NCBI GenBank assembly: GCA_946965045.2
Contig: OX337228.1
Span: 6,138,001 to 6,202,000 of the forward strand
Direction: 5' to 3'
Source: Epithemia pelagica
Taxonomy: Eukaryota > Protista > Bacillariophyta
DNA: 64,000 nucleotides
Positions 3,685 through 63,212 of this stretch are shown here, one piece after another (position 1 is the stretch's first letter; each line of letters opens with the position of its first letter). A model generated the notes under the pieces. That model made no database searches and had not been told where the DNA came from. It saw nothing but the letters and a program-made list of their open reading frames with translations. The translations under genes and the position numbers were made by a program.

Positions 3685-5492
3685 GTCGCGGCATCGTTTG
3701 GGCGCGCAAAACTATGCCATCCACAAAAGGCTACCGAGAACTACGCCTATTGTATGCTCTCTAGCGCACAAGCCGCCTATCTAGAAACGAGAAAAAGGGT
3801 ACTCTTGTTCGTCTGTCAAACAATGCTTCGTCTCTTCTACTTGCAACTGTTCCCCATGATCGTCATGTTAGAACTAGTATTCTTCTTGTTGTTGCTGCTG
3901 TGAAAGGCATTGTTGTAGTCTTCATGCTGGTCCTGCTTCAATGCCATGAGAAACGCAAGGTAAGGGTTGTTGCTTTGGGGTGAATAATCACACCAACAAC
4001 CAGACCCTTCCGAGTCCAGTAGGACTGTAGCATCATTCATTCAAAATCTCGCTCCGTCAGCCAGGAGTCGAAAAACTTGAATCTCTCGTATTGTAGCACA
4101 GTCGCCGAATGCAACCATGCCGACCAAATGTTTGACAGTTTCCATTCCAAACGCCACGGCTACCCCATGTCCTCACGCCTACCCCATGTCCTAAATCGGT
4201 CTCTCTTGGATCGTGCCTTGGTATGGGAATGACAAGACAGAGTTGCGGTGGTTTTTTTCATGATTCCGAGCATTTCTAACCGATCCAGTGTTGTGCAGGG
4301 TACTGTCGTGTTCTCAACTACGTAGCAAGGCAAATTCTTTGTATCTGTGGATACGGTGAGCCATTTCTAATCGGTAGTAGTAACATGAGAGTGAGTGTGG
4401 GTCAACGCCAAGAACCATTCCACGGAAATGGGCAAAATCGATCCAATAAACTTTTGGGAACATGGCCGAGGGACCATAGTTCATTCACTGTCACTTGTTT
4501 CCTTGTTTTGACCCTCATCGCCATTGTTGTTTGCCATTTTGTCGTATGGGAGGACAAAATGTGCGGGAACCTCACAAGAATGAATCCTATATGGTATTGT
4601 GTCTTCGGCTTGCATCCTACAGTGGTTCAAAGAGGTTCCAACGTTCTGCCATTATGAATCCGGCTCTCTCGTGGTCCAGATTGATTTTTCTTCCATGTTG
4701 GCTCATGGTTTCGATACTACGGTCCATTCGAACATGTGTCACTTATTCCTTCACGTACGCAGGAGCGCCAAAATCGCAAAATCGAGCGTTGATGGAATGG
4801 CCCCTCAGGGTGGGGAGTATCGATTGCCCATCAAATCTCTCTTCTTTTGCAGAAGAACCGGATGAATCCCTGTCCCTAAAACTCCAACGGATCCAACAGG
4901 TATCGGCTTGTTGAGGATAACTCCTCATTCGGGGCGATATCGGTGGTGGTTGATACCATTGTTGTCGCAGAAAGGCAATACTTGAAAAGCAACAAGAAGG
5001 GGATGCATTTCACTCAATGTTCATTATAGGTCTCATTTTGTTTCTTCCATACTTAGATGAGGACATCAATTTAGTCGGTGTGTAGCCTACATACTCGTGG
5101 TCAAAGCAATTCCATTGTCTTTCATTGTTGCTCGACAAAGTGTCTTAGTGTGGCCTTCGAGAAAATTGTGGAGGGAGGTCAAAAAATCATCCGTCGAGTT
5201 TGACCGCGCGGGGTGAGCTTCCATTATCGGGTGCATGCTAAGTCTTGGATCTGTGTTTATTACTGATCCCGTACGACTTTGATCCTGATTTGTCACATAA
5301 TAACCATCCAAGCCTGCACGACAAATATTGGCCTATTCGTATAGTTTAGTGCGTCGAGCCGACCCCTCACGATTAAACGGACGCTCTGATCCCCACTAAA
5401 CGGAAGGAAAAATTGGATCCAACCCCTGGGAATTTTGAGACAAACAAACGATCGAAAGCGCACTTCTCTGGACGAGAAAAGGGACCTTCATC

Positions 5493-26306: not shown

Positions 26307-27684
26307 TCACAGAAACTGGCACTCCATTTTATGTCGGCCAGATCTCCAATCATACACTTGACACAACTTGGAACAATACTTTGCACGACAGCATCGACTA
26401 CACATTTTCATTCGAGATACACGGATATCAAGAGATTGGGGCGTCTTTGTTGGTGGTGGTCCAACAGAAGCTTCACTAGCCATTGAGTGCGCATCATTTA
26501 CTGGCGAAACACTCAACTCACTATGTGACAACCCGACATTGGTCTCGCCCGACAAATGATCTGCCGGTAACCCATCCGGTTGTTGTTGCAAAGAAAGCGC
26601 TGCTGCCCGTAGATGTGCGGCATGGCGGCGCTGACGAAAGTTACGAATTCCTGGGGGAGCAGTCGTGGCGGCCTTGAACGCCCATCTCCCGCAAAGCGGA
26701 TTCCAGCAATGGCTTGTACTGAATTCTCTAAGATCCGTGGATTTGACGTAGTGGCGACTCAAGAGACGATTCAGACACAAAGGATCAAGATGGCGTCGGA
26801 GCTCCTCCGCCTTTGGTTCTCCGTACTGCGCCTTCATTTGACGGGGCGACAGAACTTCTTGAAGAGCCGGGATATATCCAGCGTTTGCTGCATTCGTCAT
26901 CTGGTCGGACGCTTCTTTCGGATGAGAGTCACGCAACACCAGTCCCAAAGCGTATGAGGCCCGTACGTAACCTTGTGATGAAGCCGCCCGGAGCAAGTTA
27001 ATACCACACTCGACATCTTGATTACAGTAGCTTTTAATAATTCCAAGCCTGAGCGACCATGTGAGAACTTTGCAGGCGAGACGGATTTCCAATCTGATTA
27101 AAAGAGACTTACATGTAAATAGCTTCCAAATTTCCGGCGAGAGCAAATGGAGCCAGGTTTTCGGACGCAGCTTCTGGTGTGTCCTTCTCCGTTATGATAC
27201 CATTCAGTCCAGTCTCTTTGTCACCTCCAACTTGGATTCCAATCAACATTTCATCTGTATTGGAAATTCTACGAAACTGTTTACAGGTGCACTGCAAAGC
27301 ATGGCGATCCTCAACCCCTCCCAAGAACGACAGGCAATGCGAGAGCAAATCCTCTGGAAGGGAACTAAGTGAAGGCCCGTTCTTACTGGGCCTCTTAGGA
27401 ACATCACCTGTCTCTTCTTTCGGAAAAACGTTACCACTGGATTCTGCTGACAAACGTATCCTTTTCGCTGGCCGCGAATCCTCTAATTCAGTGTCCGGTT
27501 CGTCCGTGGGACCTAATGTCGACAGACGACTGCTGCCACCGTACCAGCGTTTGCGCCGTCGGTCCTCCCTACGTTTTATCCCTCTCGTTTCCTCCCCCTC
27601 CTCAGATTCCCCTTCATCCGTTTGACCAAATAGTCCCATTGTCAAGTTGGAGAAGAAAGAATCCATACCCATTCTGAACTGCAT
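26307..27684 (-). CDS. F-box / Sel1-like / MYND zinc-finger protein; intron 27049-27112
   Basis: F-box LSSLPEDLLSHCLSFL; spliced IYM|LGIIKSYC; Sel1-like ASYALGL; C-terminal MYND CSRCCRAKYCSKLCQVYDWRSGRHKMEC. Start codon could be 27684, 27672 or 27666. Confidence 0.85.
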
Positions 27685-31019: not shown

Positions 31020-33070
31020 ATGGGCAATGCGGATTCAAAAGGAGGCAAACCGGTGGATGTGTCCATGATGGACCCCATAGGCGGCGACTCGGGCGGAGAT
31101 GGTTATGGGGACACCAATGGCTTTGAGGAAAAGAAGGAAGATCACTACACGGGTCACAAGAGTCGAAAAGGCTCCAAAAACGGGGGCCGATCCAAGACCA
31201 TGGCCAATGGCAAAGATATTTGGAACTCGATTGGTGCCGAAGGAGATTTGGCGGCTGCGGAGGATCAAGTGCATGTCAATTTGGCCATGGCCGATCTCAT
31301 GGCCTATTTGCAAGTGGTTGCCAACAATTCCAACCATCTACCGTTGACCAGACGTGATGACCCTGAGTTGGATCGCAGCGTCAGTCAGCTCAGTGCGGAA
31401 GACTATGCCCGAAAATCGGCAGCCTTTGTTCCCTCCGACGTGCGCGTGATTGGAGGAGTCTTTACGCGCTATGGAAGAGTCTGGGATTTACCCAACAGTT
31501 CGGTAAGTTTTTGATGGGACAGCGATGCAAACAAAACATCTTATGTTCTCTCATGTCTCATTTGATGGTTGCTTACTGGTATCGTTAGGAATATAATGCC
31601 TGCGATGGCGCTCACGAACCAGGCCGTTCCTATGGAGGTGCGTGTGCCAACGCCTTGCTCAAGGTGGTCTACGATGCTGCCAGTGAAGTGGCCGATGCGG
31701 CGCAAAACGATGCAGCCGCGGCTTCCTTGTTTGAAGACGATGATGAGAATGACGCGGACAACTTTTCGATTACGCAAAAATCTGTCCGATCGGGCTACAG
31801 TTTGGACTGCACTCAACCCAATCCCACAACCATTACCTGGGCAGAACTCCTTCGAAAAATGAAGGCTGAAATGAAAGAGATTGAGTACGCACAATATCCG
31901 AAGATCACAACCACTAGAAAGATTGATCTCTCGAAACCATTCTCGCTCGTACCAGAGGACTTTGACTTTGGAACGGGACAGAAACGTGCCCTCCTGATTG
32001 GCTGCAACTACACAAACATGAACGACGCGTTGCTCAAAGCCAGCCATGATGATGTGCGATCAATGAAGGTAGGTTTGAATCTTGGTCGCATCAGGATTAT
32101 TTTCCCCGCACGTTACATGTATTGACTCACTTTTTGTCTGTTCTCGTTCCAGGACTACATTGTCAACGTTCACGGATTTTCAGAGTCGGAGGATCTTATG
32201 ACAGTTCTCCTTGACGACGGTGATCACAAGCACCCAACGTTCAAAAACATTACTGAGGCATTTAAAGCGCTGTCGGAACAAGCTCAACCAGGTGATGCTG
32301 TTTTTGTCCAATTTTCGGGTCATGGAGGTCGAATCTTGGACACGGACGTCGAGGACGCCTCCTATGACGAAGTTTTGGTACCCACCGACTACATTGAGTC
32401 CGGATTGGTCCGAGATACACTCATCTTCAAAACACTGTTGGCACCCATGCGATATGGTGTCACAGTGACCATTGTTATGGATTGTTGTGACAATGGAATG
32501 TTACTAGAGCTTCCCTATTCTTGGTCGACGAAATCGGATCGACATCAACGGGAGAGTTCCGCTAAACTTTCAATCAACGATGACTTTTCTTTTGTCCGCT
32601 TCCTAAAGGTTGTGAAAACCTTGTATGAATCCTCAACCTTTACACAGCTTGGAAAGACTGTCGGTCACGCTCTACACGACAATGAAAATGAAGACGAATT
32701 TGGTCCGGAAGCAGATTTTGAGTCAGACCATGAAAAAGAAACTGCCATGGATGTATCACAAGACAAATCCTTGTTTGAAATGTTTGCCAAGGCGTGCAAT
32801 TTAAATACCAAAACAGAAAAACGACGCAAGAATGGTGCACTTGCTCCGAAAGAAACCATGCTGGATCAATTAATCAATAGCTGTAGTGTCTTTGCTCCGG
32901 ATGAGGGTGAGATAACGGACGAAGACACTCTTCGGACGGACACAGATGGAGGTTATTCGTACGATGAAGGAACGGCACACGAGGGCACGAACAGATCGTT
33001 TGATTCAATATCCGACGATGAATCCATGGACCGGAGAGGGCGACGAAACCACCGTACTCGACGGAAGTAG
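31020..33070 (+). CDS. Type III (p10-before-p20) metacaspase-like protein; introns 31503-31588 and 32069-32152
   Basis: p10-like GGACANALLK...TWAELL...QYPKITTTRKIDL precedes p20 KRALLIGCNY, FSGHGG, DEVLVPTD, DCCDNG. Both introns are phase 0 GT-AG and restore the frame. Confidence 0.88.
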
Positions 33071-58109: not shown

Positions 58110-61100
58110 CTATTCAGTCTTTCTGGAGATGGCTTTCAAAACTGCATCTTCGCATCTCTCACGTTCAGTGGCATCTGGGCATAGCAAAGTGATCCTTTCC
58201 TGAGACCCCTCGCCTCGCCCAAAGATAACGATGATTCTGTTCGCTTCTTCACCCTTAACTGCCCTCATCTCGACTGGAGAAGGTGTCGCAATCCCTGCAT
58301 GTCCATCCAGAGTCAGCTGCCCTAGTACGGCTTCGCCTCGGTCGAAGCTATCAGATGAATTCCACCAAAGGAATCGGTGGCCTTGGAGGACGCAAAAAGC
58401 CGGACGTCGCTGTTCAGATGAAATAAACTCTATGTTTCCATGCCATGCGGATTTCCATAGGGCACTGAGTCTTTCATTTCGCCTCTCCGCCGAGCGGCTT
58501 TCAGCTTCAAGAGCAACAACCCGTCTTGTGTCCCAGTAATACGTTCGTCTCATATCTTCATCGGTGGGAAGCCCTATGAACGCGTTGGAGATCCAGGTTG
58601 CTACAGAAGGCGTATCGCTAGTAGACTTCTCCTTTTCGGGCTGATTGGATCCATGTGAGACTTTCCGAGATCTTGTCGACTGAAAGAGACGAGCATGTAA
58701 GGTAATACCGAACTGCAGGATTCCGGCTGCTGACATTAGAAAACGTGAAGGAATTATTGAAAGTACCATCCATGCCAGTAATATTACGACAAAAACAACG
58801 GATGATTTGTACGGATCAGAGAAGTTGAAGACGTTCAAGACTGCCTCAAAACAATCCAAAACTGTTCCCAAAGCATTCTGCACAGAGAGCAATGTGCTGC
58901 TCAAGCCTCGGACGGTGTTAAAAGCACCAATGGACGAACCGAGAAGAGACACCTTTTGCTGGCGAAAGAATCGCGCTGCTCTGATCATTTCTTGATGAAC
59001 AACCACGGAGGCTTCTTTTTCCTCATCAGGAGAAGAGCCAAGAAAACTTTCTGGTGGAACCCAGCTGAGCTGGACCAGGAGCTGTGGGGTCCCACCCGAG
59101 GGAAGCTTGCTGCGTAGTTCAAAAGGGACATCTTTCTTTCCAGGCTCACGGACCTCAAGCCAACCGCGTATTTCCCCTTGGGATATCAATTTTGAAACGG
59201 GGATAACGACTTGACCCAGAATATGTTCTGTACCTGGTAAAATGCTGACAAGGTCGTGGAATCGAACTTCGAGAATGATTGCGGCAGGACTTGCTGTCCA
59301 TGGTTCCAAGGAGATATTCTGTCCGTGGTGACGTCCTGGTTGAAGTAACGGAAAGGAGAAACGTGAATTGACGCTTGAGTTGTCATGATCAAAAATAGGG
59401 CCTTCAAAAGGAAAAGCTTGGCGAATTCGACTTGATTCTAGACTTTCTGTTGATTTGTGCCATATTGGATCCGACGAATACACACTTTCTGTGAAACCCA
59501 ATTCGTGAGGAGCTCCCAGGGCTTCATCCAGAGCAACGGAGCGTTTCCTGTCGTCCTCACTCATTAAATGAGTGAGGTCAAGCGAGACTTTGCAAACGGC
59601 ACTTCCAGGAAGTCCGTATTCGGGGTATTTCAAATTCGACCCTTTTACAATTTCGATGTTGATCATCCCCATAGATCTAGGAACCTTTCCGTCCTCGTGT
59701 TCCAGTTTCTCGAGATCTCGGTTTATGTATCTTCTAGGCAGCCTCCCGTGAGCCCTATCAAATCCCAGATATGCCATGATAACCAAGAGGGCAAACAATG
59801 GCATTGCCACAATGTGTTTGGACTTTGAAGTGATGCACAAGTGAAAATATATGCAAGCACAAAACGCCGTTATTGCTGGGTTCTCCCAACTGACCATGAA
59901 TTTGTATATTTCTACAAGCTTTTTCGCATCTCTGATCAAGTTCGATATTCGACGAATGTGATTTTGGAGAACCGCCAGGTCAAGTTGATCATGGGATCTT
60001 GGGGGGCATTTATAAGGGCTTGGCCCATATAATGCATTTTCGTCCTCTTCCAAAAGGAGATCGAGTTCGACGGTTCCGACAACAGCATCATCAGACGAAT
60101 CTGAGAAAAAAGCTACTGCACTCTGCTTGTTTGCCTCCTGTAGATCTAAAACAACTCGACGGGAAATGTTAAATGTCACGGGGCCACTGAAAACCCAAAC
60201 AAAGGGAATGATTGTTGAAGAAGCGTAGCTGTCACGTTGCTGTTGTAGAATTGCGTTTGCTGGAAGTACGCAAGATCCAATCACGCTATCGGTCGCATCA
60301 TCAACCAGTTCCAAACTGAACTCAACACCATAGCTTGGAACGGGTAGACTCATTTCGCCAGATCTAAACTTTGGTCGGCCCGACTGTTGGACCGTTTTTG
60401 TACGAATCATTTGACCAGTTGAGCTTGTGATTCTCATGTAATAGTCTCCTTTCTTCGTTAGGGCAGACAAAGACGCGCCTTTATCCACGTTCGATGAAGA
60501 GCTTGGATGCTTGGCAGATTGAAAGACGAACGCCTTGATGATGTTCACCTTGAGGGTCCCAACTGCTGCACGGGGGACATTGTTGTCACCATCACCAAGA
60601 CCATTCAACCCCATTCTCACAGTCGGCCCTGACGGGACGTTTTCCCGTACGTGGGGTGGATGGTTGCGGCCATCATCTAACTCAGGAACGGGAGCAACCG
60701 TTCGTAGAATGTTGTCTACCGTAAGTTTCGACTGAATACTTTGTGCCGCAGCAGAGGTAGCTGACTTGGACCCACAGGGCAATCGAAAATCAACATGTAA
60801 ACGACAATCATAACAACAATCGACTCCGCATCTTTCACACCGATAGGCAGGCGTTTTGCGAAACCCTGATGCAATACTCCTCGAACATACAGCGCACCGA
60901 GCAGCAACATAAAATACTTTTAAGCGGAGTAGGTGAGTTTTCGAGGATGAAATGACAACACCGTCCACATTTCGAAAGGAACTTAACGAAGTCGAGTGGT
61001 CGGATTGAGACAACTCTCGCTTTAGAGGTGGTCGTCGTTTCTTGGATGATAAGATCGTAGAGGATGTCTCAGATATTACATACTGTTGAACTTCATTGAA

Positions 61101-62480: not shown

Positions 62481-62876
62481 GCTGCAACTAAATTATGTTT
62501 AATTACTATCGGCAAACCTCATGTCGTGTCCCTAAGAAAAGCACACTGAACAAACAACCAGCATCGTCGTCGTCCTCTCTAAATTTTCTCGTTGCCATCA
62601 CAATGCCATGGCTATACTCGTGAATACACTTGAGGGACTGAAATAGTCAGACTACCCGTCCCTCAAGTAAACTTTGGAGGAGGGTCTCATCACTTTGTTG
62701 AGGGAGGGGTGCAAAGCGGAGGATTTGGTGGCCGAGTGGTCAAGTCTAAGGGCAACAGCAGTTGTCCTTGTCCTCACTGAGGTTTCATTGGTGCTCTACA
62801 GTCTACAGAGGCTTTGCTTTGCCCATGAAAAGAGAAGAGTGCTGGTAGGAGGTAGGACTAGGAGCAGGGCGGCTGG

Positions 62877-62887
62877 AAAAACCAAAA
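62877..62887 (-). terminator. RNA polymerase III terminator (T4 and T5 runs) downstream of tRNA-Leu
   Basis: Minus strand reads ...GTCA ACC TTTT GG TTTTT just after the discriminator base. Confidence 0.75.
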
Positions 62888-62890
62888 GGT

Positions 62891-63054
62891 TGACGACTGT
62901 GGGATTTGAACCCACGCCTCCGGAGAGAATGGAGCCTAAATCCACCTGCGGGAAGTTGCGACATTGGGCACTTGTGAGAAAGCAAGGGGTTATTCGACGA
63001 TGAATGCTTAACAATCATTAAACTTACCACCTTAGACCACTCGGTCAAATCGTC
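62891..63054 (-). tRNA. trnL-UAG: tRNA-Leu(UAG), intron-containing: exon 1 63028-63054 (27 nt), intron 62946-63027 (82 nt), exon 2 62891-62945 (55 nt)
   Basis: The joined sequence GACGATTTGACCGAGTGGTCTAAGGTGGTGGATTTAGGCTCCATTCTCTCCGGAGGCGTGGGTTCAAATCCCACAGTCGTCA (82 nt) folds into a full cloverleaf: 7-bp acceptor, D arm, GTGGA/TCCAT anticodon stem, loop TT-TAG-GC, Leu-type variable arm, T arm, A73. Confidence 0.93.
62946..63027 (-). other. 82-nt GT-AG intron at tRNA position 26/27 with spliceosomal-type signals
   Basis: GTAAGT...TTCTCAC...ACTTCCCGCAG. Removing exactly this segment restores the cloverleaf. Confidence 0.85.
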
Positions 63055-63076
63055 CCGCAAAACCTGGTGAAAATTG

Positions 63077-63085
63077 ATATAAATA
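63077..63085 (-). promoter_or_regulatory. TATA-like element TATTTATAT at about -31 to -23 of the tRNA
   Basis: Position matches the upstream TATA elements of Pol III tRNA genes in plants and fission yeast. Confidence 0.55.
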
Positions 63086-63212
63086 CGGTTGTTGACTTGT
63101 TTTTGTTGACCGACATTTTCGCGCCTGCCATCTCCCTCCGCACAGATTTTGTCAACACTTCGGCTCTTGGCAACAGGTCCAACTCCAACAACTCCTGTTC
63201 TACCAGTTCACC

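Follow-up and report, generated by a model that had tools for sequence, protein, structure and literature searches.

A tRNA-Leu(UAG) gene in the diatom Epithemia pelagica, split by an insert with the features of a spliceosomal intron

A split tRNA-Leu gene and its insert

The window—the whole 64,000-nt stretch of DNA analysed here—contains a nuclear tRNA-Leu(UAG) gene, of the eukaryotic class II type, that is split once; it lies on the minus strand from 63054 to 62891, between the gene for a 1456-amino-acid (aa) protein and a TBCC-domain gene, and all parts of it described here are on that strand. Working from the 5′ end, we find a TATA-like element (TATTTATAT, 63077..63085, by direct reading) at −31 to −23 from the start of the tRNA; the box is unchanged in the organism's other haplotype (see below), similar A/T-rich boxes sit ~20–35 nt upstream of most orthologues, intron-bearing or not, and it would presumably act as a promoter. 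Exon 1 (63028..63054, 27 nt, as placed by ARAGORN on the spliced form) supplies the 5′ strand of the acceptor stem, the D arm and G26; it holds the A box (TGACCGAGTGG, 63047–63037), and its D arm is identical to that of one of the intronless orthologues (L051).

Next, after position 26 of the tRNA (26/27), comes an 82-nt GT-AG insert (62946..63027). It opens with the 5′ site GTAAGT (63027–63022), carries the candidate branch motif CTCAC, within a longer TTCTCAC, at 62978–62974 (the A at 62975, −30 from the insert end), and closes on the acceptor CAG (62948–62946), its end reading CCCGCAG; nowhere does it contain a run of four Ts. Exon 2 (62945–62891, 55 nt) then provides the anticodon arm with its TAG anticodon (62938–62936), the long variable arm, the T arm with the B box (GGTTCAAATCC, 62912–62902), the 3′ strand of the acceptor stem and A73. 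A Pol III-type terminator (62877..62887), made up of TTTT at 62887–62884 and TTTTT at 62881–62877, begins 4 nt past A73; these T runs are kept in both haplotypes and every orthologue has a T run shortly past the tRNA end. A box, B box and T-run terminator are all present, with an unusually long A-to-B spacing of ~125 nt.

When the exons are joined (…AAGGTG to GTGGATTTAGG at the predicted junction), ARAGORN calls a canonical 82-nt tRNA-Leu(tag) with A73, every stem paired (20/20 standard pairs) and the long variable arm that, like A73, is expected of a Leu tRNA. The first-pass annotation, made from the letters of the window, had described this gene at 62891–63054 with its insert at 26/27, the GTAAGT start, TTCTCAC ~30 nt before the end and an 82-nt, fully paired product of GT-AG removal, and in all of these its coordinates and sequence were right. 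No substitution or indel breaks a stem or box, and the window allele was on that count rejected as a tRNA pseudogene. Across the whole window, the unspliced gene is called neither by ARAGORN at default settings nor by Rfam at the gathering threshold; under permissive settings Rfam recovers no more than the T hairpin from the tRNA region.

As a reference for the insert we used two sets of mRNA introns: approximately ten credible ones in the window, obtained by joining open reading frames across GT…AG pairs, and four certain ones from alignment of the TBCC protein of E. clementina with three genomes. These introns are 64–143 nt long and start with GTAAG, GTACG or GTAGG, with CTCAC, CTCAT or CTGAC 13–38 nt ahead of a YAG acceptor. 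The tRNA inserts known to us (window, other haplotype and a second species, locus L047) fall within this range at 77–86 nt, and that of the window resembles the genome's mRNA introns in length as well as in its two splice sites and its branch motif. TTCTCAC itself also precedes the acceptor in the mRNA introns ending at 27049 and 30896, with ACTCAC in one ending at 32152, which bears out the earlier remark that CTCAC stands ahead of the acceptors at 27049 and 32152. The U1-matching 5′ site reads G/GTAAGT in the window and the other haplotype and CAG/GTGAGT in L047; the branch motif, with its A at −30, is CTCAC in the window (CTCAT on the other haplotype), and L047 has CTGAC with the A at −26; CAG closes all three inserts. 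Four registers (−1 to +2) give an identical spliced product, and only register 0 is GT-AG. A run of TTTT, which would stop Pol III, is absent from the three tRNA introns and present in 6/10 of the candidate mRNA introns; a weak signal. The spliceosome is, to our knowledge, the only known machinery that uses splice signals of this kind, and removal of the insert as a lariat would be its work.

With respect to where the insert came from, its junctions show a 3-nt direct repeat (GGT in the window, CAG in L047), which is not diagnostic since the exon consensus at splice sites gives the same repeat. Such a repeat and a recent, lineage-specific gain are also features of introners and other transposon-derived introns (PMC11282704); unlike those, the insert occurs only once in the window and ten further loci (~200 kb of DNA sampled) and its ends are not inverted repeats (4–6 of 20 terminal bases complementary); the DNA sampled gives no indication of an introner family.

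A script encoding the geometry of the bulge-helix-bulge that the tRNA splicing endonuclease recognises (outer helices around a central helix of 4 bp, with bulges of 3 nt cut after their second base) found at most two of the four central pairs in any register that yields a tRNA, be it in the window, the other haplotype or L047, whereas our positive control, the E. clementina orthologue with its 22-nt intron at 37/38, scores 4/4 together with a 4-bp outer helix. If the cut sites are left unrestricted a few chance helices appear, but essential bases would be lost. With no bulge-helix-bulge in the valid registers and a position at 26/27 rather than 37/38, we rejected an endonuclease-type tRNA intron; enumeration with a working control thus confirms what the first reading of the letters had stated for the equivalent registers.

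Orthologues beside TBCC and the two haplotypes

In nine loci (the window, L001, L047, L049, L050, L051, L052/L053, L054 and L061/L062) a tRNA-Leu(UAG) gene adjoins TBCC, a synteny that is unusually stable for a tRNA gene. Five outgroup genes (L049, L050, L051, L052/L053 and L061/L062) are intronless, lie ~0.2–0.5 kb from TBCC in either orientation and score 56–65 bits against Rfam, so that a search for intronless Leu(UAG) genes in related diatoms, as had been suggested at the outset, is answered in the positive. The E. clementina orthologue (L054:3890–3787, JBGMNV010000035.1, minus strand) has an ordinary 22-nt intron at 37/38, with its helix formed. In L047 (positions 4571–4727, plus strand; ENA ERZ25042306 ctg3266l) we see a 77-nt insert at 30/31, reading CAG/GTGAGT … CTGAC … ATCAG/A; its spliced form is an 80-nt tRNA-Leu(tag) with TTTT after A73, and the gene is inverted with respect to the window arrangement, 235 nt upstream of the TBCC reading frame.

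The TBCC protein of L047 falls in the same 90% cluster as that of E. clementina, and in the TBCC tree the window organism is sister to this pair, with 100/98 support for the three and with Nitzschia, Cylindrotheca and Seminavis outside them. One gene is therefore interrupted in three ways among three close relatives—GT-AG at 26/27, GT-AG at 30/31 and an ordinary intron at 37/38—and not at all in the outgroups. Across seven distinct orthologues all stem pairs are standard (140/140), whilst 15 of the 20 paired positions vary, mostly by double-sided changes; the anticodon stem of L047 has lineage-specific pairs, which create an optimal CAG/GT exon end. The tRNA/TBCC neighbourhood as a whole spans pennate diatoms whose TBCC identity is only 62–67%, and the tRNA may point either way.

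Following synteny through the 1456-aa neighbour instead, we found no tRNA at that position in E. clementina (L002) or in L003; in the organism represented by L048/L055–L060, sister to the three species, there is no tRNA within ~0.5 kb upstream of TBCC. Between the window and L047 introns no homology is detectable (z = −0.7): they share nothing beyond their splice signals and lie 4 nt apart in the GT-AG register, so that a single origin does not follow. The history is possibly one of a single gain, a 4-nt slide and replacement in E. clementina, or else of repeated gains; either way, the differing interruptions in the three relatives offer a rare view of intron gain, sliding or class switching.

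A protein (P0001) that is 98% identical to the neighbouring 1456-aa protein leads to a further locus, L001, which matches the window at 98.1% identity over 15.9 kb. Two versions of the upstream region are present in run X3 at depths of 179 and 165; given this and the level of identity, we take the window and L001 to be the two haplotypes of one diploid organism. L001 carries this gene too, interrupted at the identical position, which dates the intron to before the haplotypes separated.

Between the haplotypes none of the 72 aligned exon bases is substituted (0/27 in exon 1, 0/45 in exon 2), as against 21/77 in the intron, which has a further 14 gap columns (Fisher p = 2.5e-7 versus the exons). 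In the 21 nt upstream of the tRNA (63055–63075) 8/21 bases differ, all of them (8/10) inside a hypervariable patch of the 5′ leader at −3 to −12 (63057..63066); the 3′ flank past the terminator, also hypervariable (62835..62873) shows 7 substitutions and 13 gap columns in 52 alignment columns. With the near flanks taken together, 15/77 positions differ (p = 3e-5 versus the exons), compared with 0.9% divergence for the surrounding 14 kb and 1.9% for neighbouring coding sequence. The other haplotype's intron, 86 nt in length, is only ~47% identical in its interior, yet GTAAGTTT and TCTCA are intact and 22 of its last 26 bases survive. Selection has thus acted on exons and splice signals alike since the intron arrived, in line with the initial judgement that the exons look selected rather than decayed.

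In active, selected tRNA genes the mature sequence is conserved whilst leader, intron and trailer diverge strongly, with a peak of divergence 10–15 nt upstream and with intron divergence tracking that of the flanks (PMC6130373). The position of the leader patch fits this upstream peak and, as far as sequence can speak for activity, the haplotype pattern as a whole is that published signature; it is not what one would expect of a gene that is untranscribed or of no use. Seen on a larger scale, window positions 62500–63200 are the most diverged part in 16 kb (67–92% identity per 100 nt against ~99% elsewhere), the changes clustering in patches that adjoin the tRNA unit. A separate 9-nt haplotype indel lies inside the 1456-aa reading frame (window 59646–59736; 1456 versus 1459 residues).

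How the insert may be removed

We consider it probable that this is a working tRNA-Leu(UAG) gene whose intron is removed by the spliceosome, given the full set of splice signals in two species, the absence of the structure needed by the endonuclease and the selection on exons and signals alike. In the mechanism we propose, an old, TBCC-linked tRNA-Leu(UAG) gene would have gained a spliceosome-type intron between positions 26 and 27 in the lineage of the window organism, and would be transcribed as its own Pol III unit from the TATA-like box and the internal A and B boxes, ~125 nt apart, to the T-run terminator. The precursor would be unable to form the anticodon stem and would offer the tRNA splicing endonuclease no bulge-helix-bulge; U1 would instead recognise G/GTAAGT, the CTCAC adenosine 30 nt ahead of the acceptor would serve as the branch point, and G26 would be joined to G27 by the spliceosome, leaving RNase P, RNase Z and CCA addition to complete the tRNA. 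Counting against this reading, a Leu(IAG) tRNA bearing inosine could perhaps decode CUA as well, and efficient spliceosomal splicing normally depends on coupling to Pol II, to which recruitment of the spliceosome is ordinarily tied.

The last of these points favours an alternative in which the spliceosome is kept but the polymerase is not: the tRNA would form part of a Pol II transcript (an upstream non-coding RNA, or the 5′ leader of the 1456-aa gene lying downstream), its insert being spliced co-transcriptionally as a leader intron before RNase P and RNase Z release the tRNA. In both species with a GT-AG insert the tRNA does point towards a near downstream protein gene, with the ATG 410 nt away in the window and TBCC at 235 nt in L047. 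We nevertheless regard Pol II release as unlikely, and a Pol III precursor as the more likely of the two, since the layout of TATA-like box, A and B boxes and T-run terminator is shared with the intronless orthologues, since the hypervariability of leader, intron and trailer closely follows the tRNA unit, as at Pol III tRNA loci, and since the tRNA introns avoid TTTT, weak though that signal is. Moreover, Pol III-made U6 is spliced in fission yeast (PMC5855946).

That the gene is dead is, we think, quite unlikely. According to this explanation a spliceosome-type intron, or a mobile element with splice signals, inactivated the gene on insertion and the locus is slowly decaying, with Leu(UAG) function supplied by another copy or by wobble reading. 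It draws on the L001 haplotype, whose assembly (compared at L001:9430–9587) lacks 10 nt, window 62895–62904, and with them the integrity of the T stem and acceptor; a 3-nt GTC microhomology borders the deletion, which is probably real and would make one allele of the sequenced individual null, and a dead allele argues for dispensability or redundancy of the gene. Saying this, a contig from a seawater metagenome (X11), with the same type of flank as L001, does not have the deletion and so has an intact 3′ half. That standard tRNA finders do not call the gene also fits inactivation, as do the raised depth in X3 of relatives of the tRNA 3′ part and the lack of spliced product among the X3 contigs. 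Runs X1–X4 behave like DNA, and at the locus the X3 contigs are unspliced and DNA-like only, with no spliced joint. Equally, among these contigs there is no intronless copy or junction and no loose end at 62945, a point against the pseudogene that is weak because coverage has holes.

The sequences at raised depth share the 3′ third of the tRNA (over window 62874–62931) at 4–8 times single-copy depth; their contigs hold the T arm, acceptor and even the 17-nt trailer, or else positions 41–73, before running into unrelated sequence, and they may be paralogous Leu genes or tRNA-like transposon segments. Contigs of two other organisms (D and E) match only the 3′ two-thirds of the tRNA, as loose ends of 30 letters, and 43 metagenome matches to the exact anticodon arm were discarded, all of them being chance occurrences in unrelated DNA and none a tRNA. 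More telling against a decaying locus is the contrast since the haplotype split between exons without a substitution and intron and flanks changed at 19–27% of positions plus indels, together with the retention of splice signals inside an otherwise scrambled intron; the L047 orthologue, moreover, is also split by a GT-AG insert and yet retains a perfect cloverleaf with compensatory pairs particular to its lineage.

Very unlikely, in our estimation, is a functional gene from which the insert is removed without the spliceosome, by a relaxed tRNA splicing endonuclease with ligase or by another nuclease, the GT-AG signals being leftovers of the intron's origin. The normal 37/38 intron of the E. 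clementina orthologue speaks for it, as do the equivalent registers: those of the window (25/26–28/29) and L047 (27/28–30/31) overlap at 27/28 and 28/29, so that one shared cut position is conceivable. Set against this, the central 4-bp helix and 3-nt bulges are missing from every tRNA-yielding register in three alleles from two species by a method that scores its control fully; leftovers should decay, yet GTAAGTTT, TCTCA and CAG have been kept whilst 27% of intron positions were substituted, and GTGAGT, CTGAC and CAG are found independently in a second species.

An artefact of assembly is contradicted by the agreement of two haplotypes with a read-derived X3 contig that equals window 62920–63049 with zero differences, spanning the whole insert and both junctions, and with the X11 contig, which extends from the 3′ flank across exon 2 and into the last part of the insert, thereby crossing the 3′ junction; nor is a chance origin of the signals credible, GTAAGT at the boundary (over four registers) with CAG at the other end having a probability of ~1e-5 and the second species carrying the same signals.

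Relation to known systems

Removal by the spliceosome, if it occurs as we propose, would have its nearest precedent in fission yeast: in S. pombe the Pol III-made U6 snRNA is interrupted by an intron of the mRNA type (Tani and Ohshima 1989, 1991, reviewed in PMC5855946). In both cases a GT-AG intron with a branch site interrupts a small, structured, non-coding Pol III gene, whose RNA would be able to function only once the spliceosome has taken the intron out. Here, though, the host is a tRNA and no part of the spliceosome, so that the explanation offered for U6, reverse splicing at the catalytic centre, is not applicable; splicing is established for U6 and predicted for our gene; and tRNAs, unlike U6, have an intron-removal enzyme of their own, which the reading we favour would see bypassed. 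Spliceosomal introns are further described, in that review, from ascomycete rRNA genes and from the U1, U2 and U5 snRNA genes of some yeasts (PMC5855946). These resemble the present case in being of spliceosome type, in hosts that encode no protein, and in being patchy among close relatives; they differ in belonging to Pol I or Pol II genes and to other host RNAs, none of them a tRNA. tRNA is not named among the non-coding RNAs that the review lists as carrying spliceosomal introns (PMC5855946), and full-text literature searches turned up no described case of a tRNA gene with such an intron, in agreement with the first-pass annotation, which knew of none.

Non-canonical tRNA introns of the bulge-helix-bulge kind, known from Cyanidioschyzon merolae, Chondrus crispus, nucleomorphs and Archaea (PMC3728597, PMC4090602, PMC13578239), likewise split nuclear tRNA genes outside 37/38 and are likewise overlooked by ordinary tRNA finders. 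They are short to medium in length and defined by a motif that was absent here when looked for, GTAAGT and CAG boundaries and a branch motif standing in its place; the window insert is thus not a member of that family. From the canonical 37/38 endonuclease intron, as found in E. clementina (22 nt, helix formed), it differs in position, length and boundaries, and it is without the required structure.

More tentatively, and leaning somewhat towards doubt, we put forward a wider proposal: that in a small clade of diatoms near Epithemia, Pol III-transcribed tRNA-Leu genes (UAG here and in a sister species) have gained spliceosomal introns, either on several occasions or on one with a later 4-nt slide, and that the split gene is the sole source of this isoacceptor, making CUA/CUN decoding dependent on the spliceosome. 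In the textbook view a protein endonuclease cuts introns from nuclear tRNAs and spliceosomal introns belong to Pol II transcripts, fission-yeast U6 being treated as an oddity. If true, a spliceosome-dependent tRNA would represent a new maturation route, undescribed for any tRNA. Nuclear tRNA introns would then be removed in a third manner and the processing of mRNA and tRNA would be directly linked; spliceosomal introns would prove able to colonise Pol III genes that have nothing to do with the spliceosome, and to persist there; and spliceosome recruitment without Pol II could be studied in a natural system. As standard finders (ARAGORN, Rfam) miss such genes, some genomes may be wrongly reported as lacking an isoacceptor.

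Approximately 85 nt past the 3′ end of the tRNA, and inverted with respect to it, lies a stretch resembling the 5′ half of a class II tRNA (…GGCCGAGTGGTC…TCTAAGG…; window 62719–62806, plus strand). It was rejected as a decayed inverted tRNA copy, its full-length alignment score being no higher than that of other window tiles; it may be a relic of an inverted duplication.
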